64,000 nt of DNA from Leidyana gryllorum EB-2025a. Lineage: Eukaryota; Protista; Apicomplexa. Position numbers and translations under genes: made by a program. The stretch's first letter is position 1; every line of letters begins with the position of its first letter. The stretch is from positions 1 through 64,000 of the forward strand of contig JBLWGC010000208.1 of assembly GCA_048772705.1 (NCBI GenBank), in the 5' to 3' direction. Below, piece after piece: positions 1-46,999 of this stretch. Under the pieces are notes generated by a model. It was not told the origin of the DNA and made no database searches. It was given only the letters and a program-made list of their open reading frames with translations.

Positions 1-554
1 CATAAGGTAAGAGACTCACCTATTACATGTCTTGTTCTCGTACGTGATCACTTCGTGTATCTTATGCTACAACGCTGCCGTCTTACCATCTTTTGTTTTA
101 GATGATGTTGCCCATCTCAACTTGGAACCCTTTCCCGCAAATCTGACACTTCATGTATCCCCGATGTACATGAGGAGGGGTAGGGGGAGCTAGGGGAGGG
201 GTAGGGGCTGCCAGCCTTGGCAATGGCTTCAGGTCCACCGTCGAGGCCAGTGAGTCTCTGCGAGTGCTCAATAACTCTGTTTGCTCATCTTGAACAACCG
301 TTGAGAGACACCCAATGACCTCAGTAGACGAGACCGAAGCTGAGGGAGACTGAGAATCACTCAGTGGCATGCTAACTGGGGGGCCACTGGATGCTGGTTG
401 GGGGAGGGAGCGAATGGGGGAGGGGTTAGCTGGCTGGGGAAAAAACCGAACAACCGGGGGTTCAGGCTCCATTGGCTGGAGCTCTACTCGCAATTGGGGT
501 CGCGGGGCATCCCAGTTCCTCGCAAAGTGCCGAAGCTCTTCCTCGGCTATGTGA

Positions 555-1142
555 GATGTGTGGGGATGAGGTGTGGGAACTTACTTGGTGTGGGAACGTG
601 CCAGACCAGTCTGAGTGGCACGAGGTCACGTCTTGGGAACATCTGGGGGGGAAGAAAGCGAGCGCGAGCGAGAAGAGGGCTTTTTGGATCTGAGAACAAA
701 AACAACAGTCCAAGTCCCACGTCTCGCACACCAAATCTTGGGAAAAGTGGCTCGTTTGGGCTGCTCTCTGTTGCTTGCGAGCCGCACGAGAGCTAAATGA
801 AGGAGTCTGACGACCCTTACATCTCGATGGGAGGCTAGTTTGCTGTAGCGAACGAGCCAATTGAAGTTTGGGAAGTCTCATTTTTGCAAAAATCAGGCCT
901 TCTCGTGTCTCAGAGAGCTCGAGAGAGTCGCCTATCTCCTATTCTAGCGGTGAGATTTCGCCTAAAATCTGGCTGCTAACTAATCAGGCCACTACTATTC
1001 CTAAGGTAAGCGAGAGAGCTAGTCTAGAGCTTCTAATCAAATTCCTATTTCACTAAAAGTCGTTTCTGGTACCCCCTAAGAACCCCCAAAAAACCTACGG
1101 TAATGGTCGGGCACACCCTTGCGGGTTTCGCCGACCTGCACA
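555..1142 (+). mobile_element. 5'-truncated LTR copy (copy 1), ending at the conserved ACCTGCACA site
   Basis: Near-identical to ~7759-8347 of the complete LTR; ends GCCGACCTGCACA. Confidence 0.9.
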
Positions 1143-1345
1143 ACCACCTCACAGCCACGGAGATGGCTTACAACGCATCGGTACAGAAATCAACGAACGC
1201 TACACCACTGGAATTAGATACAGGCAGAGTCACTTTCATACCTACCAACCTCACTGACATTGCAGGAACCAGGAGCACCTTTGGCAGAGTATACCTCCAA
1301 AAGTTACAGGAAGCACACGACCGATTGAACGAGGCAATTCGACTA
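1143..1345 (+). pseudogene. Ty3/gypsy integrase core fragment
   Basis: HLTATEMAYNASVQKSTNATPLELDTG resembles the gypsy integrase 'AE.AYN.S...ST..TPFEL..G' segment; followed by LQEAHDRLNEAIRL. Confidence 0.75.
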
Positions 1346-2454
1346 GTTTGCCTGTAACCTTTGGTTCGGCGTTTCGGTCGGCTTCGATGGCTGTTGTGAC
1401 TGCTGTTTGTTTTTGGATTATGTGGTTTATGTGCTTGTTTATCGCTGCATTGTACTGTGTTTGCGTGTTCGCGAATGTTTAGCTTTCAATTCTCTACACG
1501 TTCCGGTTGCTGTAGCGTGCGCAAGTAAGGTCTGATGTGGTGTGTATTGTGCTAATAAAAGACTGTGACGATATAGTTGTGTTGCTTAGTATGTTGACAG
1601 GTATCGTGCTTGTTATGTATTGATTTGTGAGACTATATGAGCTGGAGATGCATGATTGTATGAGTGTATGGCGTGTATTTTGGTAACTGTGCTGTGATGT
1701 GTAGTATGCTCAGTTTGCTAAAGTGAATGTGGAGCAACTTGGAAGGTTATGTGTGAGTGATATTGGTTTAGATGGTTTGTCTGTTAGGCTGTGAGGGGTC
1801 TAGAGTGAGTCAGCGATTCGCTCGTTGATTGAGGAGTATTTGTAGACGTATAAAAGCTTGTAATGCTAGATATAGGGGGATCAATGAGATTCAGTTGAAT
1901 TGAGAGTGTTGAGAAGAATGTCATGAGTCCAATGCGTATCGTGGACATTATTTATCGGAGTGAATGGGAATTTGTAAGAATATGCGGATGGAGTCAAGTT
2001 ATGCATAGGATTTGAGTGTTGATTCGGACGACATGAATTTGGCTAATGATAGGTAGGTTAATAGGAGTATATTGACAATTGTGATGTAGTTCAAGGTGTG
2101 GTAAGAGGGTGGTGGTCAGTTGTTTGCTATAAAACATTGAGAGAGTGTATATATGCTAAGAGTTATGAGTATTCGAATTGTTAGTGTACGAGCGGGATGA
2201 TAAGGCTGATATGTAAGTTGAGTAATAGTGTGCGTGAAGAAGTATTGATGGGGTGTGGGGAGCGCCCTTGTCGCTTCGCTCGGGCGCTTCCCCGTACCCA
2301 TTGTTTCTGTGAGATTTATTTATTGATGGAATAGTTAGCAAGCTATCGTGAATGTGATAAGTAGAACGAACCAATTGCATCAATCTTGCGTGCAATTGCT
2401 CTGGAACGATATGTACGAGTTCAAACGACTTGTAGAGAAGTGTCATTTAAGTAC

Positions 2455-3855
2455 CTATCAAGTAGCAAATAAGTGTGAAACAAGTGTCAAACAACTCGGA
2501 AACCAGTGTCAAGCAAGGCTGGAACATGTTGCAAACAAGTGTCAAACATGTCGCGAAGCAAGGGTCAAAGCAGTTCGCAACAAGTCTCAAACATGTTGGA
2601 AACAACTCGCAAACAAGTGTCAAAAGAGTAGCAAACATGTGGCAAACAAGTGTTCAACAACTCGCAAACAAGTGTCAAACATGTATCAAACAAGTGTCAA
2701 GCATGTGGCAAACATGTGTCAAACAAGTGAGAAGCATGTGTGTAACACGTGGCAAACAATTAGCAAACAAGTGTCAAAGATGTCGCAAACAAGTAACTAA
2801 CAAGTGTGAAACAAGTGGCAAACATGTGTCAAAGATGTCGCAAACATATCGCAAACATATCCTAAACGAGTGTCAAACAGGTGTGAAACATGTGGCAACA
2901 AACAAGTGGCAAACATGTGTGTCACACGTGGCAAAAAAGTAGCAAAACAAGTGTCAAAGATGTCGCAAACAAGTGTCAAACGAGTGTCAAACAAGTGTGA
3001 AACATGTGGCAAACATGTAGGAAACAAGTGGCAAACGTGTGTGTAACACGTGGCAAACAAGTAGCAAAACAAGTGTCAAAGATGTCGCAAACATGTCGCA
3101 AAGATGTCGCAAACATGTCGCAAACAAGTGTCAAACGAGTGTCAAACAAGTGTGGAACATGTGGCAAAAAAGTGTTAAACATGTGGCAAACAAGTCTCAA
3201 CGGAGTTTCAAACAAGTGTTAAACATGTGGCAAAGAACTGGCAAGCAAGTGTAAAGCATGTGGCAAACAAGTTTCAAAGAAGTATCAAACAAGTAGCAAA
3301 CAAGTGTCAAACGAGTGTCGAACAAGTGTGGAACATGTGGCAAAAAAGTGTTAAACATGTGGCGAACAAGTCTCAACGGAGTTTCAAACAAGTGTTAAAC
3401 ATGTGGCAAAGAACTGGCAAGCAAGTGTAAAGCATGTGGCAAACAAGTTTCAAACGAGTGTCAAACAAGTGTGGAACATGTGGGAAAAAAGTGTTAAACA
3501 TGTGGTGAACAAGTCTCAACGGAGTTTCAAACAAGTGTTAAACATGTGGCAAAGAAGTGGCAAACACGTGTCAAACGAGAGTCAAACAAGTGTGAAATAT
3601 GTGGCAGAAAAGTGTTTAACATGTGGCGAACAAGTCTCAACTGAGTGTCAAAGAAGTATGAAAGATGTGGCAAAGAAGTGGCAAGCAAGTGTAAAGCATG
3701 TAGCAAACAAGTGTCAAACGAGTGTCAAACAAGTAGCAAGCAAGTAGCAAACAAGTAGGAAACAGGTAGCAAACAAGTGTCAAACATGTCGCAAACAAGT
3801 CTCGAACATGTTGCAAAGGGGTATTGAAGGTGCTACAAAGAGATGTGTAACACAA
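2455..3855. repeat. Degenerate ~11-bp satellite (AAACAAGTGTC / AAACATGTGGC family) with higher-order repeat structure
   Basis: Tandem imperfect units seen directly; generates spurious KHVANKCQTS-type ORFs. Confidence 0.9.
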
Positions 3856-3912
3856 GTATCATCTGGTACAAGTTGCACACTGGTGACGAACTCTGCTTTT
3901 TTGAAAAATTTG

Positions 3913-4086
3913 GTAAGGGGTTAAGGATGACGACATGAAAAATTCCGATGAATTAGTAACGGGTTAAGGATGACGACATGAAAAATTCCGATGAATTTGT
4001 AACGAGATAAGGATGACGACATCAAAAAACACCGATAAACTTGTAACGAGATAAGGGTGACGACATCAAAAAATGTGATAAATTTC
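3913..4086. repeat. 43-44-bp minisatellite, 4 copies (GTAACG(G/A)G(T/A)TAAGGATGACGACAT(G/C)AAAAA...)
   Basis: Direct inspection; repeated at 5426-5599. Confidence 0.9.
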
Positions 4087-4270
4087 GCTTAGAGACACCC
4101 AATAACCTCAGTAGACGAGAAATGCGGTAGGGGAGACTGAGAATGACTCAATGAGATGTTAGCTGGGGCGTCACTGGATGCTGGTTGGGGCAGGTAGCGA
4201 ATGGGGGTCAGTTGGCTGGGATAAAAACTGCACAATGGGGAGGTGAGGCTCTGGTCGCAAAGTGGCGAAG

Positions 4271-4877
4271 CTCCTTGGGGGCGTTCTGGGATGTGTGGGG
4301 ATGAGGTGTGGGAACTTACTTGGTGTGGGAACGTGCCAGACCAGTCTGAGTGGCACGAGGTCACGTCTTGGGAACATCTGGGGGGGAAGAAAGCGAGCGC
4401 GAGCGAGAAGAGGGCTTTTTGGATCTGAGAACAAAAATAACAGTCCAAGTCCCACGTCTCGCACACCAAATCTTGGGAAAAGTGGCTCGTTTGGGCTGCT
4501 ATCTGTTGCTTGCGAGCCGCACGAGAGCTAAATTAAGGAGTCTGACGACCCTTACATCTCGATGGGAGGCTAGTTTGCTGTAGCGAACGAGCCAATTGAA
4601 GTTTGGGAAGTCTCATTTTTGCAAAAATCAGGCCTTCTCGTGTCTCAGAGAGCTCGAGAGAGTCGCCTATCTCCTATTCTAGCGGTGAGATTTCGCCTAA
4701 AATCTGGCTGCTAACTAATCAGGCCACTACTATTCCTAAGGTAAGCGAGAGAGCTAGTCTAGAGCTCCTAATCAAATTCCTATTTCACTAAAAGTCGTTT
4801 CTGGTACCCCCTAAGAACCCCCAAAAAACCTACGGTAATGGTCGGGCTCACCCTTGCGGGTTTCGCCGACCTGCACA
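4271..4877 (+). mobile_element. 5'-truncated LTR copy (A)
   Basis: Matches LTR from CTCCTTGGGGG to GACCTGCACA. Confidence 0.9.
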
Positions 4878-5425
4878 AACAAGTCTCAACGGAGTTTCAA
4901 ACAAGTGTTAAACATGTGGCAAAGAACTGGCAAGCAAGTGTAAAGCATGTGGCAAACAAGTTTCAAACGAGTGTCAAACAAGTGTGGAACATGTGGGAAA
5001 AAAGTGTTAAACATGTGGTGAACAAGTCTCAACGGAGTTTCAAACAAGTGTTAAACATGTGGCAAAGAAGTGGCAAACACGTGTCAAACGAGAGTCAAAC
5101 AAGTGTGAAATATGTGGCAGAAAAGTGTTTAACATGTGGCGAACAAGTCTCAACTGAGTGTCAAAGAAGTATGAAAGATGTGGCAAAGAAGTGGCAAGCA
5201 AGTGTAAAGCATGTAGCAAACAAGTGTCAAACGAGTGTCAAACAAGTAGCAAGCAAGTAGCAAACAAGTAGGAAACAGGTAGCAAACAAGTGTCAAACAT
5301 GTCGCAAACAAGTCTCGAACATGTTGCAAAGGGGTACTGAAGGTGCTACAAAGAGATGTGTAACACAAGTATCATCTGGTACAAGTTGCACACTGGTGAC
5401 GAACTCTGCTTTTTTGAAAAATTTG

Positions 5426-5599
5426 GTAAGGGGTTAAGGATGACGACATGAAAAATTCCGATGAATTAGTAACGGGTTAAGGATGACAACATGAAAAATT
5501 CCGATGAATTTGTAACGAGATAAGGATGACGACATCAAAAAACACCGATAAACTTGTAACGAGATAAGGGTGACGACATCAAAAAATGTGATAAATTTC
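5426..5599. repeat. Second block of the 43-bp minisatellite
   Basis: Copy of 3913-4086 within the 1513-bp duplication. Confidence 0.9.
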
Positions 5600-5783
5600 G
5601 CTTAGAGACACCCAATAACCTCAGTAGACGAGAAATGCGGTAGGGGAGACTGAGAATGACTCAATGAGATGTTAGCTGGGGCGTCACTGGATGCTGGTTG
5701 GGGCAGGTAGCGAATGGGGGTCAGTTGGCTGGGATAAAAACTGCACAATGGGGAGGTGAGGCTCTGGTCGCAAAGTGGCGAAG

Positions 5784-6390
5784 CTCCTTGGGGGCGTTCT
5801 GGGATGTGTGGGGATGAGGTGTGGGAACTTACTTGGTGTGGGAACGTGCCAGACCAGTCTGAGTGGCACGAGGTCACGTCTTGGGAACATCTGGGGGGGA
5901 AGAAAGCGAGCGCGAGCGAGAAGAGGGCTTTTTGGATCTGAGAACAAAAATAACAGTCCAAGTCCCACGTCTCGCACACCAAATCTTGGGAAAAGTGGCT
6001 CGTTTGGGCTGCTATCTGTTGCTTGCGAGCCGCACGAGAGCTAAATTAAGGAGTCTGACGACCCTTACATCTCGATGGGAGGCTAGTTTGCTGTAGCGAA
6101 CGAGCCAATTGAAGTTTGGGAAGTCTCATTTTTGCAAAAATCAGGCCTTCTCGTGTCTCAGAGAGCTCGAGAGAGTCGCTTATCTCCTATTCTAGCGGTG
6201 AGATTTCGCCTAAAATCTGGCTGCTAACTAATCAGGCCACTACTATTCCTAAGGTAAGCGAGAGAGCTAGTCTAGAGCTCCTAATCAAATTCCTATTTCA
6301 CTAAAAGTCGTTTCTGGTACCCCCTAAGAACCCCCAAAAAATCTACGGTAATGGTCGGGCTCACCCTTGCGGGTTTCGCCGACCTGCACA
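5784..6390 (+). mobile_element. 5'-truncated LTR copy (B)
   Basis: Matches copy A at offset 1513. Confidence 0.9.
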
Positions 6391-7068
6391 AATGGGGGTC
6401 AGTTGGCTGGGATAAAAACTGCACAATGGGGAGGTGAGGCTCTGGTCGCAAAGTGGCGAAGCTCCTTGGGGGCGTTCTGGGATGTGTGGGGATGAGGTGT
6501 GGGAACTTACTTGGTGTGGGAACGTGCCAGACCAGTCTGAGTGGCACGAGGTCACGTCTTGGGACCATCTGGGGGGGAAGAAAGCGAGCGCGAGCGAGAA
6601 GAGGGCTTTTTGGATCTGAGAACAAAAATAACAGTCCAAGTCCCACGTCTCGCACACCAAATCTTGGGAAAAGTGGCTCGTTTGGGCTGCTATCTGTTGC
6701 TTGCGAGCCGCACGAGGGCTAAATTAAGGAGTCTGACGACCCTTACATCTCGATGGGAGGCTAGTTTGCTGTAGCGAACGAGCCAATTGAAGTTTGGGAA
6801 GTCTCATTTTTGCAAAAATCAGGCCTTCTCGTGTCTCAGAGAGCTCGAGAGAGTCGCCTATCTCCTATTCTAGCGGCGAGATTGCGCCTAAAATCTGGCT
6901 GCCAACTAATCAGGCCACTACTATTCCTAAGGTAAGCGAGAGAGCTAGTCTAGAGCTTCTAATCAAATTCCTATTTCACTAAAAGTCGTTTCTGGTACCC
7001 CCTAAGAACCCCCAAAAAACCTACGGTAATGGTCGGGCACACCCTTGCGGGTTTCGCCGACCTGCACA
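6391..7068 (+). mobile_element. 5'-truncated unit (C): short flank + LTR copy
   Basis: Matches 4200-4877 with several SNPs; ends GACCTGCACA. Confidence 0.9.
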
Positions 7069-7582
7069 ACAGCAAGAAGAACAAGCGAACAAGAAGAGGA
7101 AACCAATAACGTTTCAGCCAGGAGAGCAAGTGCTCCTGAGCACGAAACAGTTGAGCCACGTACCCACCAATAAACTCGCCCTACCTTTCTGCGGGCCATT
7201 TACAATACTGGAAAGCTGTGGATGCGACACATACAAGCTAGATCTGCCAGACTCATGGGGAATGTACCCAAAATTCCACTCGTCACGACTGGAAAAGTGG
7301 TACCCACGACAAGGCGAAACCAACTCAGCGCGAGACGAGACGGACACTACGCCAAACGAAGAAGAGACTCTCTACATCATGCAGGACATTGTGGGATGGA
7401 AACAGGAGGGCAACCAATTGTACTACAGAGTCCGATGGGTGGGATATCAAGACGAGAGTTGGGAGACAGCTGAAACAGTACTGGATGCAGACGGTGCGGA
7501 CTTGATAACCGAATTCAAACACAAGTGGAACAACAAATATCCACGGAACCCGTTCAGTCTAGGGGAAGAGGGAGGGGTGTAA
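7069..7582 (+). pseudogene. 3' end of chromovirus pol: integrase C-terminus (GPF motif) + chromodomain
   Basis: ANKKRKPITFQPGEQVLL...KLALPFCGPFTILE...TYKLDLP...FHSSRL (GPY/F domain) then YYRVRWVGYQDESWETAE (chromodomain). Confidence 0.9.
7561..7577 (+). other. Polypurine tract (PPT)
   Basis: AGGGGAAGAGGGAGGGG immediately before the TG of the LTR. Confidence 0.9.
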
Positions 7583-8397
7583 GCGTGTCTCCGGGGAGAC
7601 CGGCACGGACCGGCATGGAGACACAGACACGAGTTTTTAGACACACGCACGAACTTAGACTAGAACAAAAAACAGATGGACTTACGAAGCGGCCGAGCAG
7701 TGCAACCGACCCTAGCAGGTAGCGCCGAGCAAGGCTACACTCCTTGGGGGCGTTCTGGGATGTGTGGGGATGAGGTGTGGGAACTTACTTGGTGTGGGAA
7801 CGTGCCAGACCAGTCTGAGTGGCACGAGGTCACGTCTTGGGAACATCTGGGGGGGAAGAAAGCGAGCGCGAGCGAGAAGAGGGCTTTTTGGATCTGAGAA
7901 CAAAAATAACAGTCCAAGTCCCACGTCTCGCACACCAAATCTTGGGAAAAGTGGCTCGTTTGGGCTGCTATCTGTTGCTTGCGAGCCGCACGAGAGCTAA
8001 ATTAAGGAGTCTGACGACCCTTACATCTCGATGGGAGGCTAGTTTGCTGTAGCGAACGAGCCAATTGAAGTTTGGGAAGTCTCATTTTTGCAAAAAACAG
8101 GCCTTCTCGTGTCTCAGAGAGCTCGAGAGAGTCGCCTATCTCCTATTCTAGCGGTGAGATTTCGCCTAAAATCTGGCTGCCAACTAATCAGGCCACTACT
8201 ATTCCTAAGGTAAGCGAGAGAGCTAGTCTAGAGCTCCTAATCAAATTCCTATTTCACTAAAAGTCGTTTCTGGTACCCCCTAAGAACCCCCAAAAAAACC
8301 TACGGTAATGGTCGGGCTCACCCTTGCGGGTTTCGCCGACCTGCACAACGAAGCATTCACCTGAGCACTACGAACCCGGCCTTAGAGCCAGGTTACA
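7578..8397 (+). mobile_element. Complete 3' LTR (820 bp) of a Ty3/gypsy chromovirus
   Basis: Starts TGTAA after the PPT and ends TTACA (5-bp terminal inverted repeat); the only copy that continues past ACCTGCACA. Confidence 0.82.
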
Positions 8398-8788
8398 CTG
8401 CTATCTGTTGCTTGCGAGCCGCACGAGAGCTAAATTAAGGAGTCTGACGACCCTTGCATCTCGATGGGAGGCTAGTTTGCTGTAGCGAACGAGCCAATTG
8501 AAGATTGGGAAGTCTCATTTTTGCAAAAATCAGGCCTTCTCGTGTCTCAGAGAGCTCGAGAGAGTCGCCTATCTCCTATTCTAGCGGTGAGATTTCGCCT
8601 AAAATCTGGCTGCTAACTAATCAGGCCACTACTATTCCTAAGGTAAGCGAGAGAGCTAGTCCAGAGCTTCTAATCAAATTCCTATTTCACTAAAAGTCGT
8701 TTCTGGTACCCCCTAAGAACCCCCAAAAAACCTACGGTAATGGTCGGGCACACCCTTGCGGGTTTCGCCGACCTGCACAACCTGCACA
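8398..8788 (+). mobile_element. 5'-truncated LTR copy (E, 8398-8779) plus 9-nt reiteration ACCTGCACA (8780-8788)
   Basis: Direct alignment to the LTR. Confidence 0.9.
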
Positions 8789-9130
8789 ACGACCCTTACA
8801 TCTCGATGGGAGGCTAGTTTGCTGTAGCGAACGAGCCAATTGAAGTTTGGGAAGTCTCATTTTTGCAAAAATCAGGCCTTCTCGTGTCTCAGAGAGCTCG
8901 AGAGAGTCGCCTATCTCCTATTCTAGCGGTGAGATTTCGCCTAAAATCTGGCTGCCAACTAATCAGGCCACTACTATTCCTAAGGTAAGCGAGAGAGCTA
9001 GTCTAGAGCTCCTAATCAAATTCCTATTTCACTAAAAGTCGTTTCTGGTACCCCCTAAGAACCCCCAAAAAACCTACGGTAATGGTCGGGCTCACCCTTG
9101 CGGGTTTCGCCGACCTGCACAACCTGCACA
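8789..9130 (+). mobile_element. 5'-truncated LTR copy (F, 8789-9121) plus 9-nt reiteration (9122-9130); innermost unit
   Basis: Direct alignment; unique sequence begins ~9132. Confidence 0.9.
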
Positions 9131-9295
9131 AACCATCTGGAGCGTATCAACAACTCTAGACATTGTATAGACCGCGAAAATCGCCACGATCAACCCTCCA
9201 TTTGATAGTCAATAGACCCCCTTCCGGAGCTATTGTCGGGATGACGGTTAGGATGGTTGCAAAAGAACTCTGATAAGTAAGATTTCAAATCTGAC

Positions 9296-12223
9296 ATGCT
9301 GCAGCCCCATTCTTATATCACTCTCAAGGACCACATCATAGCCTGCCTTTGGATATCAGCCAGTCCGGAAGCAGCCGAGCTTCGCAGGAATGGCTTCTCC
9401 ACTTCGGTCACTCAAGAGAATGAACTGAAGAGGATAATGGTTCGTGGTCCTACTACTACATTGGAGTGAGTATTATTCTCCAGCCGGGTAACAAGCGCAG
9501 CTTCCAGAAGAAGTTTTCTTTGAGTGCCATCGTGGCACAAATCTCATTGCCAGGTCCAACGAAAGTAGTGAAACGTACAGCCAATCAACAATGGTGTTGT
9601 TCAGCATTCTCGAACAGTTCTTCGGTTCCGGAAGCTCTCGCTCCGCTCCGGGAGAAATTCCGATCTGCTCAACGAGACCCCATCCTCTCAGCTCTGCTGG
9701 ACATACCAGTCCTCTCCTGGACGCATGATGTCTTTGGCGATGGTTTGCTCATCAACTTATTTGCACGATGTGATATACACTTCCAGACGTCACTTCTGAG
9801 AAGCTCGAATGTGTGGTTCTCCTTGAGGTCACAACAATCCTTGATCGTGAGCGAAGGTCAGCCATCGACCTTGAAGCCCGTTGCGACTGATCACCCGATA
9901 CCCCCAAATACTTTGACGATGGCCAGCGGGCGCCGTGGACGACGAGGTCGCCGAAAGCGCATCTATAAGGAGCTTTCGTTGAGTCCGGAAGCTGAGCTGC
10001 GCCGCTATCTGGTATGGCCAGCCTCTCTGCCCGAAAGTGAAGTCCTCCTCGATGTGAGGTGGTGTATCCGGGAGCGCCAGTCTTTTCCAGCTTCTTGGGG
10101 TTGGCCCGCTAGGCACTACCTCAGCCTGCTTCTGCGGAGGCCGGTGCTACGCGTTTGTGTCGCTAATGGCTCCATGCTCGTACCGAGCGATGTATTCGCC
10201 GCACGATGGGTATTATGGGCGAATAACAGCGAGTTTCGGGTCGAGGGCCCTGACTCGCTGACAACTTTGGGAAACAGTAATTGGGGGACTAAGTACCTCA
10301 GCCTCAAACACTTCGCTGAACTGCGACATCAAATATCTTGCCGTTGCGCGTGGGACTTCCTGACATTCGTTCAAGAGATATTGAGGGATATACTGAGATC
10401 GTTGAGGAATTTGAAACAAAGAGAACTCCTGCAACGGTGGGCTCCGTGTAGACGCCGATCACTGGAGTTGGCGCCGCATTGCTATCGTGTACCCCGGTGG
10501 AACATTACCAGGCTCTTCAGAGCGTTGATTGGGTGAGTGAGTCTGGAATGCACGGTGCCCCTAGGCTCGTGGTAGCCTTGTCGTCCCTCTCCCCAGGCCC
10601 TATGTGCAAAAGCTGCAGCAGCTGGCCACAAAATTGTTGACTGGACGGATCTGCGGGCAAGTCACTGTGCATGACTGCTTGCACAACGTGGGACTGGCAG
10701 CCATCCGTCAGAAATTGGTGAGAGATTCCTCACTCATAGGTGTGGGAAATATGCTGGCCAAATTCTTTTGGGTACGGATTTGCAAGTTTGTACTGCAGAG
10801 CATTGTCTTCGTCTTGATACGGTACGTGGTGGCCACAAGTAGACTCTTTAATGTGGACAGAAAGTGGTTCCATGTGAGTGTTTTGGCAAATCGTTTCTGC
10901 TTCTTCCGTCGAGTGACGTGGTCGTACCTGACACATGAACATCTGCCCTTGATGCCTTTCACGAAGCTGCTACTGAAGGGAAGCGGATTACGCCCAATCG
11001 TAAACTATCGGCGGGTAAACAGATGCTTCCTGATCGGTCATGCCTCTTAGCCTTTGTCAGACTTCCCCATTGTGGCTGGTTGTTTCAGTGAAAGATTGCA
11101 ACGTGCTGGAATTGTGACAACTTCCTCACCGGTACGCGATTTGTATCGCATTGTAGCCTCTTTACTTCGTGCTCACCTCCCGAGACCCACCGATGCGGTG
11201 CGGGATATCGGCCAAGTTCACAGAAAGCTGCTGCAATTCGTCCGGCAATACAACAAGTATTGTTGTCGGACTGGATGTATGACGAAGCAGCTTCTCTGTG
11301 TGGCAAAATTTGACCTCAGGTCGTGTTTCAACGCGATCGATACAACCGATTTGGAGGGTCGGCTTCTGAAGGACTTGGCGTCTCACCAGTACTTTGCGCT
11401 GTACCCCTTGAAGATTGTTTTGGACCGTTTCAGAACATCTTGCACGTTGTGGGTGCCGAACGCTGATGCCGTGGAGATCAGACAGCGGGTTCGTAGAATC
11501 CAACGTAAGCTGGGGTGGCGTCTGAAGTCTGATGACACCATTTTGGTGGAGAAAGACTCCAAGAAGCCAGTGTTGGTACTACCCAAAGGGGAACTGTTTG
11601 AAATCCTATCCAAAGCATTCCAGATGGCTGGAAAGGAAGGCGGGTTGCCGCAAGGCTTACCCATCTCGTCGCTGTTGTGCGACTACTACCACGCGCGTGG
11701 CGACTGTCGAGTGAGAGCAATTACGGACAAGGCAGCACCTTCGCTGGTCATGCGTTGGACGGATGACGTACTAGTTCTGTGCCCTTCATTAAATTCGACG
11801 CAACTGGTAGTCTCAAGAGCAATGGAGATGTATCAGTCCCACTTGGCAGAAGAGAAGACGGCTATAGAACGGTACCCGCTGCAGGATGAGTGTCTCCTAT
11901 GGAAGCGACCCATTAGCTGGGCTGGTATGACGCTGTGCCCCCGGCTGGTGGGTAATACATTGCGTCTCGAACTTTCTGCGCAGAGAAACCATCTTCTTAC
12001 CTCCGGGGCATCGTTCAGTACTACAGCAGTCCGATTTCAAAAGCAGAAGTTACGGGCTAGACTGGTGGCATGTCACGCTTGGCGAAGCCGCCGCCTTTTT
12101 CTGGACGTGGAACTGAATAGTCTGCGCCACATACGCCTCAACTACAAACTGGCGAGGATGCCACTGCGGTTAATAGGAGCGTGTAAGCCAATCCTGCTCA
12201 GGAAACGACCAACCAAGAACTAG
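9296..12223 (+). CDS. TERT: Telomerase reverse transcriptase, divergent (~920 aa; predicted introns 9466-9500, 10533-10575, 10822-10860, 11015-11050)
   Basis: TEN/GQ-like (FGDGLLINLFARCDIHF...GQP), T-motif-like (LIRKWFHVS...CFFRRVTW after splicing), motifs 1/2 (LLKGSGLRPIVNY), A (KFDLRSCFNAID), B' (GLPQGLPISSLLCDYY), C (MRWTDDVLVL), D (EEKT), E (ISWAGMTL); the predicted introns keep frame. Confidence 0.9.
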
Positions 12224-12224
12224 T

Positions 12225-12784
12225 TCATGCACTGGGAACCTCTATCTCGCCAGCATCGATGGCTTTCTGGATCTCAGTGGGCTTCTTGCCGTTGACAGTA
12301 CAGCCGACGGCATTAGCAGTGCCCAACATCTCCTTCACTGTTCCCGCCAAGGTGCGAGAAATGATGCCTCTGTTAGCTGACCGCATTTCCCGAGCGATAT
12401 CGACGATAGTGTCGAAGCTGAGGTTGCCCGAATGCTTGATGTTTTTGACCTTCTTCCTGTCACGGGGGGGCTCCTTCAGGGCGCGAATAATGAGGGAAGT
12501 GGCCGTGGGGATGATTTCACAACTGATTTGACGGTTCTGGATCTTCAGCTGCACTGTGACCTTCACTCCTTTCCACGCTTGAGTGGTTTTGGCAATCTCA
12601 TCACCAGCCTTCTTGGGAGCCTGCACAACATTTAAGGATTATGGATCCAATGTGGACCGTCGTATGCACTTACGATACCAAGCGGACCCAACTTGGGTGC
12701 CAGAACGGCGGAGGAACCTGCCTCACCACCGACCTGACGGACGGTGACGTAGGAGATGGCGTTAGGGTCGAACTTGGGCGGCAT
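12225..12784 (-). CDS. RPL12: 60S ribosomal protein L12 (uL11); intron 12621-12673
   Basis: MPPKFDPN...GGE...LAPKLGPLG|[11 protein letters not shown]...[18 protein letters not shown]. Confidence 0.97.
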
Positions 12785-19586: not shown

Positions 19587-21897
19587 ATGCCTATCTTCGG
19601 AATTGATCTCGGTTCAGCCTCTTCCGTTATCGCCACTGTTGGCAAACGAGAGGTAACTATTGTGCGCAATGATTTGGCAGACCGCCTGACCCCGTAAGTT
19701 GTTGTTGTTAGAGTTGGCCCCTCTCTTCACAAGTCAATGCCTTCAGAACTTTGGTGTCATACACGGACAAGGAGCGGCTCATCGGCGATGCCGCCTTAAC
19801 TTCGATGAAGAGCAATATGACAAGAACGACAAGATACTTCAAAAACTTGTTGGGAGCGATAAATGACAAGTCATGCGACCCTGTGAGAGCCATCGAAGAG
19901 GGGTTCATGCTGGCCCCAATAGTCCCAACTGATGCCTCGGGCTTACTCGGCTATGATGTTGGTCGGTCGAACCCAGTTACCGCTACCGAAATCCTAGCCT
20001 GCTACCTCAAGAGATTGCGAAGCATTGGAGAAGCTTTCATCGGAACTAACTGTGGAGACGTTGTTGTGGCTGTGCCTTCGTGGTTCACAGATGTGAATCG
20101 TATGGCAGTTTTGGACGCGTGCGACATAGCGGGTCTCAAGTGCTATCGCGTCATGTCGCACACGGCAGCAACAGCTCTCAACTACGGACTGTTCCGATCG
20201 GCGACATTTCAGGCTGATAAGACTCAAGTTGTAGCTTTCGTTGACATTGGCGCCGCCGCCGCTTCTGTGACCATCGCAGAGTTCCAATCGGATAGACTGA
20301 GAATCGCCGCTGTTGAAGAGCGTACTGATCTGGGAGGCCGGTCTTTGGACCGCTTACTCATCATGCACCTGGCAGAGTTGTTCAAGTCAAAGACCAAAAG
20401 AGACGTCTTTGCCAACGCTCGTGCAGCCCTGAAGGTTGCCGAAGCTGCCGAGAAGGCCAAGAAAGTTCTGTCCGCCAACAAGGAGGCCAGTGTTCACATT
20501 GAATGTTTGATGGGCGACGAAGATCTGGAAGCTTTGATCACCCGCGAGACCTTCGAGGAACTCGCAGGTCCCTACAACAAATTGCTGAACGAATTGGTCT
20601 CCTCAGCCATCGCCAAGGCCAACTGCACCGCTGAAGACATCAAGTCTGTCGAGATCGTGGGAGGTGGCACGCGTGTCCCGTTCGTGCAAGCCACCATTGA
20701 GAGACTTTTTGGCCGTCCAGTCTCACGTACCGTCTCGGCTGATGAGTGTGTGGCTCGTGGAGCCGCAATCCAAGGAGCCATGTTGCATCCGTTCCATCGT
20801 GTCAAAGACTTCCAAGTTATCGATGTCCGCACCACCCCAGTGTACGTTACTTTGTCAGCAGAGACTGCGGGCAGTGCTTACGAGATGATCAAAGACGAAG
20901 CCAAGCCTATGACTTTCGCCAAGGACACTACCTTCGAGTTGTTTCCTATCGGCACACCCAGTTACTACCTCAAGTGGTTGCTGTTCCCGCCAAGTGTTGC
21001 CAGCTGCTCTCGTGTCACCTTTGATCTCTCCACAATGAACCATCATGGCAGCCTCATCCCACTGGGAACTGCCGAGGTGATTGTGCCTGACGCCATTCGC
21101 CAGCGAGCGGCTGCTGCCGAGGCAGGCAAAGCGCGTCTCAAAGTCTGCTTCAAATCGGATATCCACGGCATTGTCCAGGTGTGTGCCATCTTCGCTGAGG
21201 ATTACATGGAGAAAGAGACGATCGTGGTGTCAAAGGACGTCCCCAATGAGGCAGGTGAAATGGTCCGGACGCAGGTTGAAGAACAAGAGGATCGCTTGAA
21301 GACCAGGAAAACCGATTTGGAGGTGCGGATAGAGAGACCTTTGGGATGGCTGGGACCGAAGGAGCTGAACAACATGAAAGAGCGGGAAAGACAATTCGCC
21401 GCCGAGGACGATGCCGCCCAAAAAGCTCGCCACATTGCCAATGAAATCCTGTCCTGCTGCTTCTCAATCAGACAGGAGCTCACCGGGGCTTTGAGTGCTT
21501 TCGCTACATCGGAGGAAAAGAGTACTTTGGAACAGAAGAGCCGCGAATGGGAGATGTTCGTCGAAGAGAACCAGGGACTCGCCTACGAAGACTATCTGCC
21601 CACATGGGAAGACCTTAAGGTAGGTACCAACTAGTCTTTCCATCATAACTTGGCCGTGCACAGAAACACTACGACCCAATCCTCGGTCGCAAACAAGCGC
21701 ATGACGAGGAGCTGCGTCGCCAGGAAGAGGAGGCACGTCGTCTAGAGGAGGAAGAAACGCGTAAAGCAGAGGAAGCAGCACGAGCAGCCCAAGCAGCTGA
21801 GCAGGAAATGTCTCCCGAAAGTAGCAACAACAGCTCTCCAAACGTTGTGGTTGACGATACTATGGAAGAGGGTTCGCCTAACAGCCAGAATCAGTGA
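19587..21897 (+). CDS. Hsp110/Sse1-type Hsp70-family chaperone
   Basis: MPIFGIDLG...VRNDLADRLTP, TAATALNYG, VEIVGGGTRVPFVQ, SADECVARGAAIQGAML. Confidence 0.92.
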
Positions 21898-29583: not shown

Positions 29584-31271
29584 TTACATCTCGATTATAG
29601 CCTCTTCAAGCATTGCATCCAAGAAAGTCTGGCCTGTTTCCTTCATTCTGGACTTAGCAGCATCTTCTCTCCGTCTGGCTGCTCGAACGATCTCGAACTG
29701 TCTCAACTCTCGTATTTTCCTCCTAGAATAAGATCGCATCGCTTCGGCATCGGCGTCCCGTGGGAGCTGGACACCCAACACCTCCTCGGAATCCCCTGCG
29801 AGCCCATTGATATCCTGTAAGGTCATCAAGTACTGCCTTAAAATGTTCTCATCGTGGTCGTCGTATCTATCCACATCAGACACTACAGCAGCCATACCAG
29901 CGAACTTGCGCCAATCCCCAGACCGAAAGAAATCCTCTCTCTCTTCTTGCGATCTCAGATCATATCTCCATCGCGCGCATCGCAGCAACAGCCTTGAGAT
30001 CAGTCGCTCACAACGCATGAGCGGCCAAAAAGGTAGAGCATCCCGCCACTGTATCTCTCTCCACTCCAAATCTTCCCGAGACTTAAGACAGGTAACCATG
30101 AACCGTACGAGGGTGCGTTTGCAGACTGCTTGCAGAGTTGCCCAGTTCGAAAACGCTCTCTGGAAGATGTGACTATGATATCGATGACGTAAAGACTGGG
30201 CCGTCCTGGAAGAGTTAGTCAGACGATGTCTAATGTACAACCATGGAATCTTGGACCTCGGGTACTGTACTCCGGTGCACTCCCGTATGAGCCTAAGCAT
30301 CTCCTCATCCTCGGCAGCGGTCCACCGACCGGCTGCATTCTTGCTATAGTCGGGCTGCACACCTTCGAGGGACGCGATCGCTAGTGCTTCCAGCCTCCCC
30401 GTCAACTTCAAATCATAGTAGTGATCGCGGCAGGCTCTCCAGTACCTTCCGATCTGCAAACTCACATCCTTCCATGGAATTTTGACGGGATCGGTAGAGG
30501 ATTGGACCAACTCAACCAGCTCTCTGTCATCCTCCGTCGACCATCTGCCACTTTTTTTCCAGGGATAGAAGTGAGTGGCCACATGTTGAATAACAGACTC
30601 AATATGCCGGTGGGGTAATACTTCAGCGACATGTAACCACCTTGACCGTTCCTTGCGGCCACCAGCTTTGTCAAAGACCAGCCATTTCAAGCCCTGTTCA
30701 CGCTCCATACCGAGCTCCTGTTCGACAGAATGAGTTCGGTCTCCTGGATGTCAAATCTTACCTTGAAATATTGAGTCAAGCGATCATTAAGCAGAGCGTT
30801 CTCCGCCTCTGAAAAGGGACCTTTGACAACAATGCCATTACTCTTCTGCAAGTCAGACCACTTCCGATGATCCAAGAGTGTGGTGGCGGGGTCAGGTGGG
30901 CGTTCTCTAAGATTGATACTCTCGCTTTTATAATGGACAGCTTCGACCGCGTCCACGGGGGTCCCTACTGCTAGACGTTCCGCCGTTGTTCTTTCACGCC
31001 GCCTCTCCCGATTGTTCTTAGGGGTCTCGGGGGGCGGAAAAGAGATTGGCTGTGACAGAGAAGCAAGAGGAGTATTTGCTACTGTCGACGGGGTGCTCGG
31101 CTCGTCGACATTCTCGGCATCGGCTCCTATCTTCGATTCCAGCGAGTACTTCTCCGTCAGAAGCCGTAAACGGCGCTCAATAGCAGTCTCTCCGAACCGC
31201 CATCTTGCGAGATTGCGGCGTGGCCCGCCCATCTTCCCCAATGTGACAAAAAAATTAGGAGGACCGCCCAT
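29584..31271 (-). CDS. Myb-domain DNA-binding protein, Reb1/TTF1/DMTF1-like
   Basis: KGPFSEAENALL, KSGRWSTEDDRELVELV..IPWKDVS..IGRYWRACRDHY, GRWTAAEDEEML. Confidence 0.8.
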
Positions 31272-45624: not shown

Positions 45625-46999
45625 TTATGTGCGGAGGCCCAATCGCGTTTCGACAGATCGCCTCTCACTTTCACTGAGTTCGAAGAATGTCTGGTGATTT
45701 ATTCGAGCATGGCGAGCTAATGGTGTTCCTGATAGCAAGTCTTCGTTCTCAGCCATATCCAGACGCAGGAAGACAGCTTCACTGACTTCTAGGGGTAGTT
45801 CCTGAGATTTGTGTGTGTGTACAATAGAAAGGGAACTAGGAGACAGCGCTTACCTGTCCATCACGACTCTTCTTGAGAGGTTTGTTTTCGTTCCAAGGAT
45901 TGGTATAACTTGCGAGCTGTTCGAAGTCCACTTTGCACTGTTTCAGCCATTGTACCCTGAAGTTTGGGCTGAGTTTGCTGCTGAATGAACCCCAGACTCT
46001 TGGATACAAGCTGGGATCACTCAGCGTCGCCATTCTGGCGTAGCCCTGAAATCCTCCTGATTCATTAGCGGACATCACGAACAGCACATGATGACAGGTT
46101 CGGAATGCTTGTTCAAACTTGGCTATATTTGCTTTGCCGGTAGCCCATATCCCTTTTTGAATGGACGTGAGGATATTCTCTATTTTGGCCGACTTGATCA
46201 CAAACACCCGCACTGCGAGATCCTGACTCCTGACCGGTGGGGGGATCGGGCAGCTCCAAGGAATGGGTGGCAGCAACTCTTCCAGAGTTCGTGAAGCATA
46301 TTCTGCTGCTTTGGGGTCGTCCGTTAAGGATGCGGCGAAGATGCGCCATTTTCGGGCGTGCTCTCTCGCCACATGTTGTTCAAGTTCGTTGAATTCAATT
46401 TCAGCTCGGTTGAGAACCATCAATGCAATGTACCAGTCAGGAAGTGGAATACTCGGTCGCTGATCCGGGGTCAATTTGATATGACGTTGTGAGCAGAAAG
46501 GGCCCATGAGACAATAGCCGAACAGAAACTGTAAGCAAACCGCTCCATTTTTTCGAGCTTCAGGTTGAGGACTAACAGGGTTGCTGTCCGCGGTGGTGGG
46601 CGGTAGACTTGAAGCTACTTCGTCAGTTCCGACGTCTTCACGATCATGGCGTAGTTGACACGATCCCTGCTCGAATTCCAAACAACGCCCATGCTTGCGG
46701 AAGTGGCGGCACGGTGGCATCCGACTGGGGTCAATTATATGTAGGAAGTCACATTCATCCCCTTTTATACAGGTGCCGCGCAGCCAGTGCCGGCATACAA
46801 CTTGGTGCGTTGTTCGGGGACGTTTTATTGGCCTGTGGCTAATTTCTCCGGATTCGCCAGAGTATCGTCGGGGTCGTTTGGTGGTCTCGACGTTATTCAC
46901 AGCTTGTTGCTGCTGCTGACTATGCCTGGCCTCCTGTTCAGCCCTCTTTGCTCGTTCATCTTCCTCTATCTGGGCCTCGAAGTCGAATTGGAAATCCAT
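45625..46999 (-). CDS. CPSF4: CPSF30/CPSF4 with CCCH zinc fingers and YTH domain
   Basis: VVCRHWLRGTCIKGDECDFLH, RMPPCRHF, YTH motifs FVIKS..GIWAT..SANESGGFQGYARM..NPWNENKPLKKSRDGQE. Confidence 0.92.

Follow-up and report, generated by a model that had tools for sequence, protein, structure and literature searches.

The leftmost part of the analyzed window, i.e., of the complete 64-kb stretch of DNA, is an array of about 9 kb of head-to-tail units that adjoins a TERT gene. On balance, we favor the reading that this region is a patchwork of cDNA copies of RNAs ending at the R/U5 site of a chromovirus LTR. The polymerase was most likely the RT of a retroelement (the element's own, or one of the non-LTR or Penelope type encoded elsewhere), rather than TERT. 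The observations made in an initial annotation of this DNA are confirmed, and its interpretation, a telomere-like system, is partly supported.

Organization of the array

A BLAST search with a reference copy and a self-comparison of the window identified seven LTR-containing units and two 9-nt copies, all on the plus strand, with the single orientation and variable 5' ends described initially. The array and its flanks are made up as follows.

1..301, no strand given: left flank, non-repetitive; either unique or belonging to the upstream portion of U1
302..1142, plus: unit U1, variant LTR with ACCTGCACA end, without U5 (BLAST/self-comparison)
1143..1346, plus: E5a, integrase-core fragment, left half of an element copy that is truncated at its 5' end and continues at 7064/7069
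1347..4877, plus: unit U2' (3531 bp), leftmost of the inserted block, ACCTGCACA end (repeats and self-comparison)
1347-2465, plus: C-poor stretch of U2'
2466-3808, plus: 11-bp satellite of U2'
3902-4085, plus: 43-bp repeats of U2'
4087-4270, plus: variant U3 start in U2'
4271-4877, plus: LTR part of U2' common to the units
4878..6390, plus: unit U3 (1513 bp), ACCTGCACA end, 99.7% identical to 3365-4877
6391..7068, plus: unit U4 (678 bp), ACCTGCACA end, equivalent to 4200-4877 (99%)
7069..8397, plus: E5b, right half of the element copy, integrase C-terminal ORF and complete LTR
8398..8779, plus: unit U6 (382 bp), LTR part with ACCTGCACA end, starting at reference position 7965
8780..8788, plus: 9-nt copy of the extreme 3' end of a unit
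8789..9121, plus: unit U7 (333 bp), LTR part with ACCTGCACA end, starting at reference position 8014
9122..9130, plus: second 9-nt copy of the unit 3' end, abutting unique DNA
9131..9295, plus: unique spacer of 165 bp between array and TERT ATG, no similarity elsewhere in the window

The LTR-containing units are 97-99.7% identical, and no copy is found elsewhere in the window or on the other strand. This repeat block occupies the far left of the window and is followed by 55 kb of unique genes. The left flank (1-301) resembles nothing else in the window and has no Pfam match, no tandem repeat and, in six-frame translation, no long ORF. The 5' ends of the units fall at unrelated places, namely LTR positions 7965 and 8014, the variant U3 region, the satellite and the integrase. 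In U1, the first ~220 bp of the U3 region differ, and the remainder is 97.5% identical to the other units; its 5' end lies within about 3 nt of the variant LTR start, which is unlike a random truncation and counts against the reading favored here. The initial description of the units as LTR-derived holds for the LTR part present in seven of them, but in those at 1347-4877 and 4878-6390 this part is accompanied by non-LTR satellite DNA of up to 2.7 kb, comprising a satellite of 11 bp, repeats of 43 bp and a stretch of 1.1 kb poor in C. Unit U3 begins inside the satellite, and has two private SNPs.

Adjacent units (U6 and U7, for example) differ in shared SNP haplotypes, which represent at least three source lineages; thus, neighboring units are not local tandem duplicates. 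There is no age gradient, the rightmost unit having no private substitution in 333 bp. TSDs around the LTR-derived units were not seen in the window, as noted initially, and U5 is missing in six of the seven units. We conclude, in agreement with the earlier proposal, that the units were not placed by integrase.

The fixed 3' end

Eight plus-strand junctions end at ACCTGCACA (1142, 4877, 6390, 7068, 8779, 8788, 9121 and 9130), exactly at the coordinates first annotated. The 9-mer occurs nine times on the plus strand of the window, always within 1134-9130, compared with a chance expectation of about 0.25 per strand in 64 kb. Its ninth occurrence (8339-8347) is the native site in the only complete LTR; it precedes the TTACA end of that LTR (8397) by 50 bp, and the distance by which the junctions had been said to fall short of the LTR terminus is therefore correct. 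E5b is the only LTR unit that ends at the true LTR terminus instead of ACCTGCACA. The two minus-strand matches (14480 and 44023) fall within coding DNA, have unrelated flanks and appear to be due to chance.

The base 3' of the junction is A in eight of eight cases, as in the native LTR. The fixed end is thus more simply described as CACAA, one base further, and the true end is probably ...CACAA rather than ...CACA. The recurrent A had been taken as part of a microhomology of 1-4 nt; the A itself stands, but it is native to the LTR, and the choice of end point may account for part of this microhomology. Apart from this single native A, neither oligo(A) nor oligo(dT) nor any adapter remnant is present at the junctions. 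That oligo(A) is absent at every junction is odd for a polyadenylated template, and no poly(A) signal was recognized; both findings count against the favored reading.

A hairpin and then a 7-nt tail precede the fixed end, and the 9-mers comprise the tail and the edge of the stem. This hairpin is no more stable than shuffled controls (z = 0.47), which also counts against the favored reading. The 64-kb window contains no telomere-type repeats of any kind, nor any sign of telomerase-style repeat addition. The 9-nt copies never number more than two. The putative RNA end (CGA-CCUGCACAA) has no terminal redundancy usable for telomerase-style realignment. In metagenomes, arrays of (ACCTGCACA)n are short and for the most part internal, and those at contig ends occur in both orientations; hence there is no hint anywhere of the 9-mer as a telomere repeat. 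The 27-mer at the 3' end of the element was absent from both DNA collections searched.

A block nested within a chromovirus copy

The element from which the LTR derives has the following features.

7070-7579, plus: ORF with integrase SH3-like domain and chromodomain (Pfam)
7561-7577, plus: purine tract directly before the LTR
7578-8397, plus: complete LTR, TGTAA...TTACA, native ACCTGCACA at 8339-8347
8348-8397, plus: presumed U5, 50 bp past the native ACCTGCACA

A TG...CA LTR beside a purine tract and an integrase with an SH3-like domain and a chromodomain are features of Ty3/gypsy chromoviruses. In Pfam, the ORF at 7070-7579 matches SH3_Tf2-1 (E 3e-11) and, below Pfam's cut-off, Chromo (E 1.9e-4); homologues of this ORF carry both domains. 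The array does not have the features of an ordinary integrase-mediated insertion, in that it includes one complete LTR, no full gag-pol and no TSDs, and its pol coding consists of C-terminal integrase fragments only.

The ORF at 1145-1354 contains the end-of-core AYN...TP motif, as aligned with the homologue P0130. On P0130, E5a ends near residue 104 and the right half begins near residue 106. The two integrase fragments (1143-1346 and 7064/7069-7579) thus adjoin each other to within roughly one residue, the integrase sequence at the borders being deduced from the reading frame and this one homologue. The three units in between (1347-7068) would thus be a block inserted inside one element copy. 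Judged from this alignment, the array is nested and not simply linear; of the simple polar array described initially, the head-to-tail order stands but the linearity does not. A block between two retained integrase halves points to a two-ended internal event, not to a chromosome tip. The right junction of the block shares GCACAA with the target, and the last 5-6 nt of U4 (GCACA plus A) are equally readable as integrase, in the frame CCT GCA CAA CAG.

Several of these characteristics are those of break patching: the inner block is bounded on both sides by halves of a once-continuous integrase sequence, and the junctions have zero to a few nucleotides of homology, no TSD, and as donor the 3' part of an LTR element. 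Other characteristics are those of a terminal array, namely the head-to-tail arrangement in one orientation, with constant 3' ends inward and variable 5' truncation. However, additions are not confined to a terminus, the block at 1347-7068 being internal, and the junctions have neither oligo(A) nor telomeric repeats. The initial annotation had regarded interstitial or randomly oriented arrays as evidence against its proposal; orientation is uniform in the window, but the three-unit block sits internally, so that the process was not restricted to termini.

The adjacent TERT gene

The gene to the right of the array was assembled from reading frames and splice sites.

9296..12223, plus: divergent TERT gene, intact, 930 codons
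9296-9465, 9501-10532, 10597-11014 and 11051-12220, plus: TERT exons, then the stop codon

Its three introns are of the GT-AG type and 35, 64 and 36 nt long. The ATG at 9296 is 165 bp past the last junction (9130), matching the distance first estimated. Profile and fold comparisons indicate that the gene is a highly divergent TERT, with a TERT-type RT domain (motifs A, B', C, D and E, and the insertion in fingers) that runs on into the C-terminal extension, as had been recognized from the outset for the gene as a TERT. An hhalign comparison with six TERT relatives gave 99.2% (E 2.9e-19, 309 columns), and the library matches have a Telomerase_RBD, TERT_C or TEN domain. The top 14 PDB fold matches of the RT model, which was built from a TERT-only alignment and has a pLDDT of 63.7 (below 50 at residues 298-389, the start of the C-terminal extension), are all TERT. 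The fold matches listed include 7k9y, a 'template-switching complex' structure. The T-motif match is weak (Telomerase_RBD, E 0.51) but at the expected place, and motifs 1-2 (GLRPIVN) were recognized by eye upstream of the RT domain. With exons searched singly rather than as a joined protein, the N-terminal exons had no match with PDB or profile. The intactness of the gene argues that ordinary telomerase exists. No RT-coding gene other than TERT is present in the window, which counts against the favored reading, and no Rfam family matched the 64-kb window.

Proposed origin of the array

An RNA 3' end is the only natural molecule end expected 50 bp inside an LTR, and the eight junctions at this position thus support RNA templates. 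The RNAs would end at the 3'-end site of the LTR, putatively assigned to R/U5 and presumably a site of polyadenylation. A DNA 3'-OH would prime on the last RNA bases (...CACAA) with 0-6 nt of pairing and be extended toward the RNA 5' end over a variable distance, i.e., from right to left on the map; after that, either the polymerase would jump to a second RNA of this kind, again at its 3' end, or the reaction would be repeated in a later round. Starts at the 3' end, variable extension and jumps would together yield head-to-tail units with a fixed 3' end and variable 5' ends. Copying of RNA primed by a DNA 3' end, as first proposed, is indeed the best fit to the constant 3' ends, the variable 5' ends and the single orientation. 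The 9-nt copies may be abortive starts, covering the 7-nt single-stranded tail and 2-3 nt of the adjacent hairpin stem. Any RNA ending at the site could serve as template, including element genomic RNA (integrase-chromodomain-LTR) and read-through from satellite to variant LTR, which fits the differing upstream material across units. The segments at 1143-1346 and 7069-8397, ending at the true LTR terminus, may be captured, incomplete minus-strand cDNA. At least one such reaction would have taken place at an internal break with two ends, inside the integrase fragment; this suggests the patching or healing of breaks rather than a dedicated telomere machine.

Alternative explanations

The left of the window might instead be a chromosome end, at which a retroelement RT adds LTR-terminated RNAs to an eroding terminus in the manner of HeT-A/TART, coexisting with telomerase or backing it up. 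The uniform orientation with 3' ends toward the gene-dense side would be expected of such a terminus, as would the location of the entire repeat block; variable 5' ends, lack of TSDs and several lineages would follow from independent additions, and the piece at the true LTR terminus, with its upstream part lost, fits erosion and then healing. We nonetheless regard this explanation as rather unlikely, because telomeric repeats are lacking, nothing in the window marks position 1 as a chromosome end, the block between the integrase halves is internal, the supposedly oldest unit has no private substitutions, and an intact TERT argues for ordinary telomerase. It is far less probable still that this TERT itself copied the RNA 3' end, with the hairpin as template boundary, a part of the initial interpretation that is not supported. 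The gene is 165 bp from the array, the initiation register is fixed, and the 9-nt copies stop at the hairpin foot, recalling a template-boundary helix; however, adjacency is the sole link, the 9-mer is present in at most two copies, the RNA end offers no redundancy for realignment, the metagenome arrays do not look telomeric, and units of 0.3-3.5 kb need processive copying far past any boundary. We know of no TERT with such processivity, and of no precedent for the copying by TERT of kilobases of foreign RNA.

An origin at the DNA level would involve a variant LTR ending in ...CACA and one-ended (half-site) joining of its CA-3'OH by integrase, or a site-specific recombinase, or template switching by MMBIR. 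The fixed end does finish in CA, the dinucleotide exposed by integrases, and U1 spans from a TG at 302 to the CA at 1142, like a complete LTR. Yet a target-derived base after CA would be random, and the probability of A in all eight junctions is roughly 1e-4 or less; since the native LTR has the same A, the units extend past CA. Given also that TSDs are absent, that a well-defined LTR (purine tract, TGTAA/TTACA ends) runs 50 bp beyond the site, that MMBIR does not predict one reused start point, and that neither a recombinase gene nor a core repeat was seen in the window, we consider this origin quite improbable. An artefact, in which the left 9 kb derive from chimeric reads (amplification chimeras or library cDNA concatemers) joined to a genuine contig ending near the TERT promoter, is also improbable, if slightly less so. 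Template-switching RTs in vitro join an RNA 5' end to the next 3' end in this way, the organism is apparently an uncultured-type protist, for which the use of amplified DNA is common, and the unique junction at 9131 is at a plausible 5'-UTR length upstream of TERT. Nevertheless, the right side is genomic, with introns retained and genes on both strands, most chimeras from random amplification are inverted and such chimeras do not return to a single nucleotide, the junctions are free of oligo(A), oligo(dT) and adapter sequence, and the SNP differences among units are consistent.

Comparison with known systems

The telomeric arrays of the Drosophila elements HeT-A/TART/TAHRE are the subject of a review (PMC5537684). 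These elements form one-orientation head-to-tail arrays with intact 3' ends centromere-ward, variable 5' truncation and no TSDs, through reverse transcription primed by DNA ends; they are of the non-LTR type, oligo(A) is found at their junctions, and their location at chromosome ends is established. In the present array, by contrast, the templates would end at an LTR-internal 3'-end site without oligo(A), an intact TERT is present, one block is internal, and a terminal position is only putative. Chlorella Zepp and the telomeric LINEs of Giardia form telomeric arrays akin to those of Drosophila.

Endonuclease-deficient Penelope-like elements (Athena and Coprina) occur at chromosome termini (10.1101/2021.04.23.441226), as was reportedly found by Gladyshev and Arkhipova in 2007. 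These elements form 5'-truncated copies on DNA ends in hosts that keep telomerase, and their copying is primed where the 3' end of the RNA pairs with the end of the DNA; they differ in having short telomeric repeats between units, and a TERT-related RT that is element-encoded. The present array has no telomeric repeats between units, and the TERT-like RT is a normal-looking host gene.

In yeast, Ty1 cDNA intermediates are captured at double-strand breaks, and the 3' LTR is a hotspot of this capture (PMC11372161); earlier work (Teng 1996; Moore & Haber 1996; Yu & Gabriel 1999) is cited in such reports, as are Y'-Ty1 chimeras in telomerase-negative survivors (PMC4700185). Likenesses are the use of reverse transcripts as break filler, the taking of replication intermediates, and little or no homology at junctions, whereas most inserts in yeast are short single fragments whose end points are scattered. 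The piece at the true LTR terminus in our array would likewise fit incomplete minus-strand cDNA. The array differs in its up to three to seven serial units, kilobases long, of which six of seven start at one RNA-end nucleotide without U5.

The non-LTR RT R2 and the group II intron RT GsI-IIC jump end-to-end between templates with zero to a few nucleotides of pairing and produce concatenated cDNAs, known mainly in vitro or at the 5' junctions of single insertions. The array would resemble these products in that synthesis resumes at the very 3' end of a new template; kilobase genomic arrays of LTR-element RNA made by template jumping have, to our knowledge, not been described. With telomerase, the array would share the extension of a DNA 3' end on RNA at a fixed register beside a helix, but it has at most two 9-nt copies and no alignment redundancy, and most of its products continue for hundreds to thousands of bases beyond what would be the boundary.

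An array of LTR-derived units with a common 3' end

Strong purine and G-over-C skews set the leftmost 9.13 kb of the window apart from the remainder, and the repeats in the window are confined to this interval. Nine + strand copies of ACCTGCACA, the 9-nt motif that closes the unit junctions, were located (ends at 1142, 4877, 6390, 7068, 8347, 8779, 8788, 9121 and 9130), against a chance expectation of about 0.25 per strand in the window. At least 14 identical bases precede the motif in seven of the nine copies; the remaining two consist of the 9 nt alone, directly behind a full copy. The native site, at 8339-8347, lies within the sole complete LTR (7578-8397), which has TGTAA...TTACA ends and is preceded by a purine tract and an ORF (7070-7579). 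Thus, the special base lies 50 bp inside the 3' end of the LTR. The ORF matches a Tf2-type integrase SH3-like domain (E 3e-11) and, under the Pfam cut-off, a chromodomain (E 1.9e-4); its homologues bear both.

A unit map was drawn by combining BLAST of the complete LTR, used as reference copy, with self-comparison of the window and TRF. Every unit is on the + strand, unique DNA starts at 9131, and BLAST and self-comparison found no further unit copies elsewhere in the 64 kb. The motif locations and the LTR map bear out the junction coordinates and the array description of the initial annotation. Two DNA scans returned no sister copies of the element.

Units of the array (E5a and E5b, left and right parts of a chromovirus element copy)
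302-1142 (+), U1: LTR, first ~220 bp variant
1143-1346 (+), E5a: integrase-core fragment
1347-4877 (+), U2': C-poor 1.1 kb, 11-bp satellite CAAACAAGTGT, 43-bp repeats, variant U3 start, 607 bp of shared LTR
4878-6390 (+), U3 unit: 99.7% identity to 3365-4877
6391-7068 (+), U4: same as 4200-4877
7069-8397 (+), E5b: integrase C-terminus, chromodomain, full LTR
8398-8779 (+), U6: LTR portion
8780-8788 (+), 9-mer: copy of the unit 3' end
8789-9121 (+), U7: LTR portion
9122-9130 (+), 9-mer: copy of the unit 3' end

Inside the retro-units, the 11-bp satellite CAAACAAGTGT occupies 2466-3808 and 4876-5321 (~120 and ~40 copies, ~68% matches), and the 43-bp repeats lie at 3902-4085 and 5415-5598. Both repeats may be of subtelomeric or centromeric origin, or derive from a non-autonomous element. 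Over 1347-4270, the + strand has a marked deficit of C (12-17%). The interval 1347-2465 was considered as a C-to-T hypermutated element copy, and no likeness was seen by eye or by low-stringency BLAST. No coding capacity was found in 1-301 or in the satellite-bearing region. In the interval 7983-8014, a TATA-like sequence, TAAATTAA, is located ~18 bp upstream of the start point of U7 (reference position 8014); U6 starts at reference position 7965.

Three units inserted into one element copy

To relate E5a to E5b, both integrase halves were aligned to a 284-residue homologue that covers the two (P0130). With the register of E5a set by the conserved AYN...TP motif, its final residues fall at about residue 104 of this homologue, and E5b aligns from residue 106-109 on (E 6e-27). 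The chance of two independent breakpoints coinciding in this manner in an element of several kb is a few per thousand. We therefore regard 1143-1346 and 7064/7069-8397 as a single 5'-truncated element copy. On these alignments, 1347-7068 reads as a block inserted into that copy with both flanks kept. Three units with ACCTGCACA ends make up the block (3531, 1513 and 678 bp). At its right edge, GCACAA (7064-7069), when read in the integrase frame, can be assigned either to the donor 3' end or to the integrase, i.e., the overlap there is at most 6 nt.

Local tandem duplication would also give head-to-tail units, and was assessed by comparing the shared LTR part of the units column by column. LTR columns 513 and 595 read T and A in U1, U4 and U6, but C and T in U2', U3, E5b and U7; column 458 reads C in U4, E5b and U7. 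Neighboring units thus have different shared SNP haplotypes, which rules out local duplication for most of them as the source of the array. The only possible duplicate pair is 4878-6390 and 3365-4877 (99.7%), both of which end on the same special base. Private changes in the shared LTR part show no right-to-left age gradient.

Nature of the fixed end

All eight junctions, and likewise the native LTR, have an A directly after ACCTGCACA. In the simplest reading, therefore, the units end one base beyond the motif, at ...CACAA. With this end, the first acceptor base is C five times and A three times, i.e., unconstrained. The microhomology of 1-4 nt previously proposed at the junctions thus depends in part on where the end is placed.

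From this fixed point the units reach variably into U3, into the chromodomain and integrase, or into unrelated satellite DNA. To our knowledge, only one natural molecule end is found in an LTR some tens of bases short of its 3' terminus, namely the 3' end of the RNA at the border of R and U5; we know of no integrase-processed cDNA end, minus-strand strong-stop DNA or plus-strand strong-stop DNA that ends there. From the position of the junctions we infer that the fixed end is probably an RNA 3' end, and that any RNA terminating there could be copied from it. Instead of being 5'-truncated, U6 and U7 could be complete copies of short R-only transcripts, initiated and terminated in the LTR. At the fixed end, no poly(A) signal was recognized, and there is no oligo(A) at the junctions, an absence that an RNA 3' end does not explain. 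A hairpin can be folded from the final 40 nt of the unit, with a 7-nt tail behind it; the stability of the hairpin does not exceed that of shuffled controls. Both 9-nt copies match the 7-nt tail together with 2-3 nt of the hairpin stem, and are consistent with abortive starts.

Other origins of the end were also considered. A self-cleaving ribozyme of the retrozyme or Penelope type would define such an end, but neither a ribozyme nor any other Rfam family matched it, even at E up to 5. Helitron-like elements have a hairpin by their 3' end; here, however, TC/CTRR termini and an A|T target are lacking, and a bona fide LTR encloses the sequence. Nested ordinary insertions at R/U5 would displace the 50-bp U5 to the right of each inserted unit, but this segment is present once and is never displaced.

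The adjacent TERT gene

The gene to the right of the array was modeled by eye, and its exons were searched one by one, never joined.

Exons of the TERT gene, from three-frame reading and boundary sequences
9296-9465 (+), exon
9501-10532 (+), exon
10597-11014 (+), exon
11051-12220 (+), exon

The gene has 930 codons, and appears to be real and intact. Its GT-AG introns are very small (9466-9500, 35 nt; 10533-10596, 64 nt; 11015-11050, 36 nt), and the third holds an in-frame TAG, by which the ORF looks broken. The last exon matches RVT_1, and its PDB sequence matches are weak. A full-library search with this exon gave nine matches (E 0.001 or lower); Telomerase_RBD, TERT_C or TEN domains are present in five of them. 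A profile built from six library matches aligned to it over 309 columns, from motif A into the C-terminal extension (99.2% probability, E 2.9e-19). The top 14 PDB matches of the structure model (pLDDT 63.7) are TERTs, with the bias that a shallow TERT alignment brings to the model; pLDDT is below 50 over residues 298-389, in which the C-terminal extension starts. Over its N-terminal 500 residues the protein is unrecognizable, with nothing significant in PDB or Pfam for the N-terminal exons, apart from a marginal T-motif match and a motif 2, GLRPIVN, spotted by eye. Profile, library and fold matches together support the divergent TERT initially annotated here.

The sole link of this TERT to the array is adjacency. 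Telomerase templates require terminal redundancy, and the LTR RNA end has none; ACCTGCACA repeats in the array never exceed two copies. We know of no precedent for kilobase copying by a TERT. It is unlikely that TERT catalyzed the array. The 9-mer was also considered as a telomere repeat. (ACCTGCACA)3 is found in 62 metagenome loci, with 3-10 copies each, but these arrays are short; most are internal, and those at contig ends have either orientation, so that they lend the idea no support. These microsatellites (L001-L062) are on 62 unrelated contigs and have no relation to the element; their 9-nt unit size makes coding repeats of three residues the probable reading. A single copy of the rotated 9-mer, CCTGCACAA, is present at 12620-12628 (+), ~400 bp past the TERT stop codon and inside an apparent minus-strand coding exon, and is taken as a chance occurrence.

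Proposed reverse transcription onto DNA ends

In the proposed mechanism, a DNA 3'-OH would prime reverse transcription at the final bases of RNAs ending at the LTR site. Synthesis would run from right to left on the map, and successive units would arise by jumps to the 3' end of another RNA, or by repeated rounds. The three units of the inner block would have been added at a single two-ended break inside the DNA. For the enzyme, a retroelement RT is the conservative assumption. E5b, unlike the ACCTGCACA-ended units, ends at the true LTR terminus, and so resembles an incomplete minus-strand cDNA, normally primed at the primer-binding site. It would belong to the same class as the Ty1 intermediates captured at yeast breaks, for which the 3' LTR is a hotspot (PMC11372161).

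Whether the array marks a chromosome end is a separate question, and the telomere system proposed in the initial annotation is unproven. In its fullest form, this would be a genuine chromosome end of a gregarine-like alveolate, onto which LTR-site-ended RNAs were repeatedly reverse-transcribed, with the divergent, intact TERT as the first gene and internal breaks patched likewise; we consider this improbable. The array does lie at the extreme left of the window, in uniform orientation, with its 3' ends facing 55 kb of ordinary genes, but the window has no telomeric repeats, the 301 bp at its left edge are non-repetitive, one block is inserted internally, and the TERT is intact. The position of the inner block at an internal break favors break patching, or healing in general, over a machine acting only at termini. 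A less likely alternative is that the array is an assembly artefact. We conclude that the pattern observed is real and non-random, and that it represents an unusual kind of RT-mediated addition to DNA ends in which LTR-terminated RNAs are used. The left flank also contains a G-rich run, GGGGTAGGGGGAGCTAGGGGAGGGGTAGGGG, at 177-213 (+), which has no regular tandem pattern and whose top-strand polarity is wrong for a left-end telomere.

Addition of retrotransposons to DNA ends is known for non-LTR and Penelope-like elements, whereas LTR elements are thought to depend on tRNA priming inside particles plus integrase. Kilobase multi-unit cDNA arrays in a natural genome, begun exactly at the 3' end of an LTR RNA, would place such RNAs in a target-primed, template-jumping pathway in vivo. 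They would also connect cDNA capture at breaks in laboratory yeast with genome evolution in a wild protist, and would be relevant to the long-standing proposal of an evolutionary connection between head-to-tail terminal arrays and LTRs. If terminal, the site would be the first LTR-retrotransposon-based terminal array, and a testable case of retroelement healing alongside telomerase. The literature searched covers non-LTR and Penelope-like terminal arrays and RT-mediated break repair; no 3'-anchored array of LTR RNA was found in it, which, given its incomplete coverage, is no proof of novelty. Yeast Ty1 and Y' phenomena are known (PMC4700185).

Neighboring genes

The 55 kb of genes to the right of the array include HSP110-like, Myb, YTH and VPS13-like genes. 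The best named relatives of the HSP110/Sse1-like ORF (19751-21634, +) are Gregarina spp. transcripts (39-41% identity), and its best match overall has 48% identity; this similarity suggests that the DNA is from a gregarine-like alveolate. Three exact-protein look-ups gave no match, and none of the window's proteins is in the large protein collection queried, where identity to the closest proteins is at most 48%. Further to the right are the Myb-domain gene (29584-30708, -) and then a gene with CCCH zinc-finger and YTH domains (45836-46999, -).
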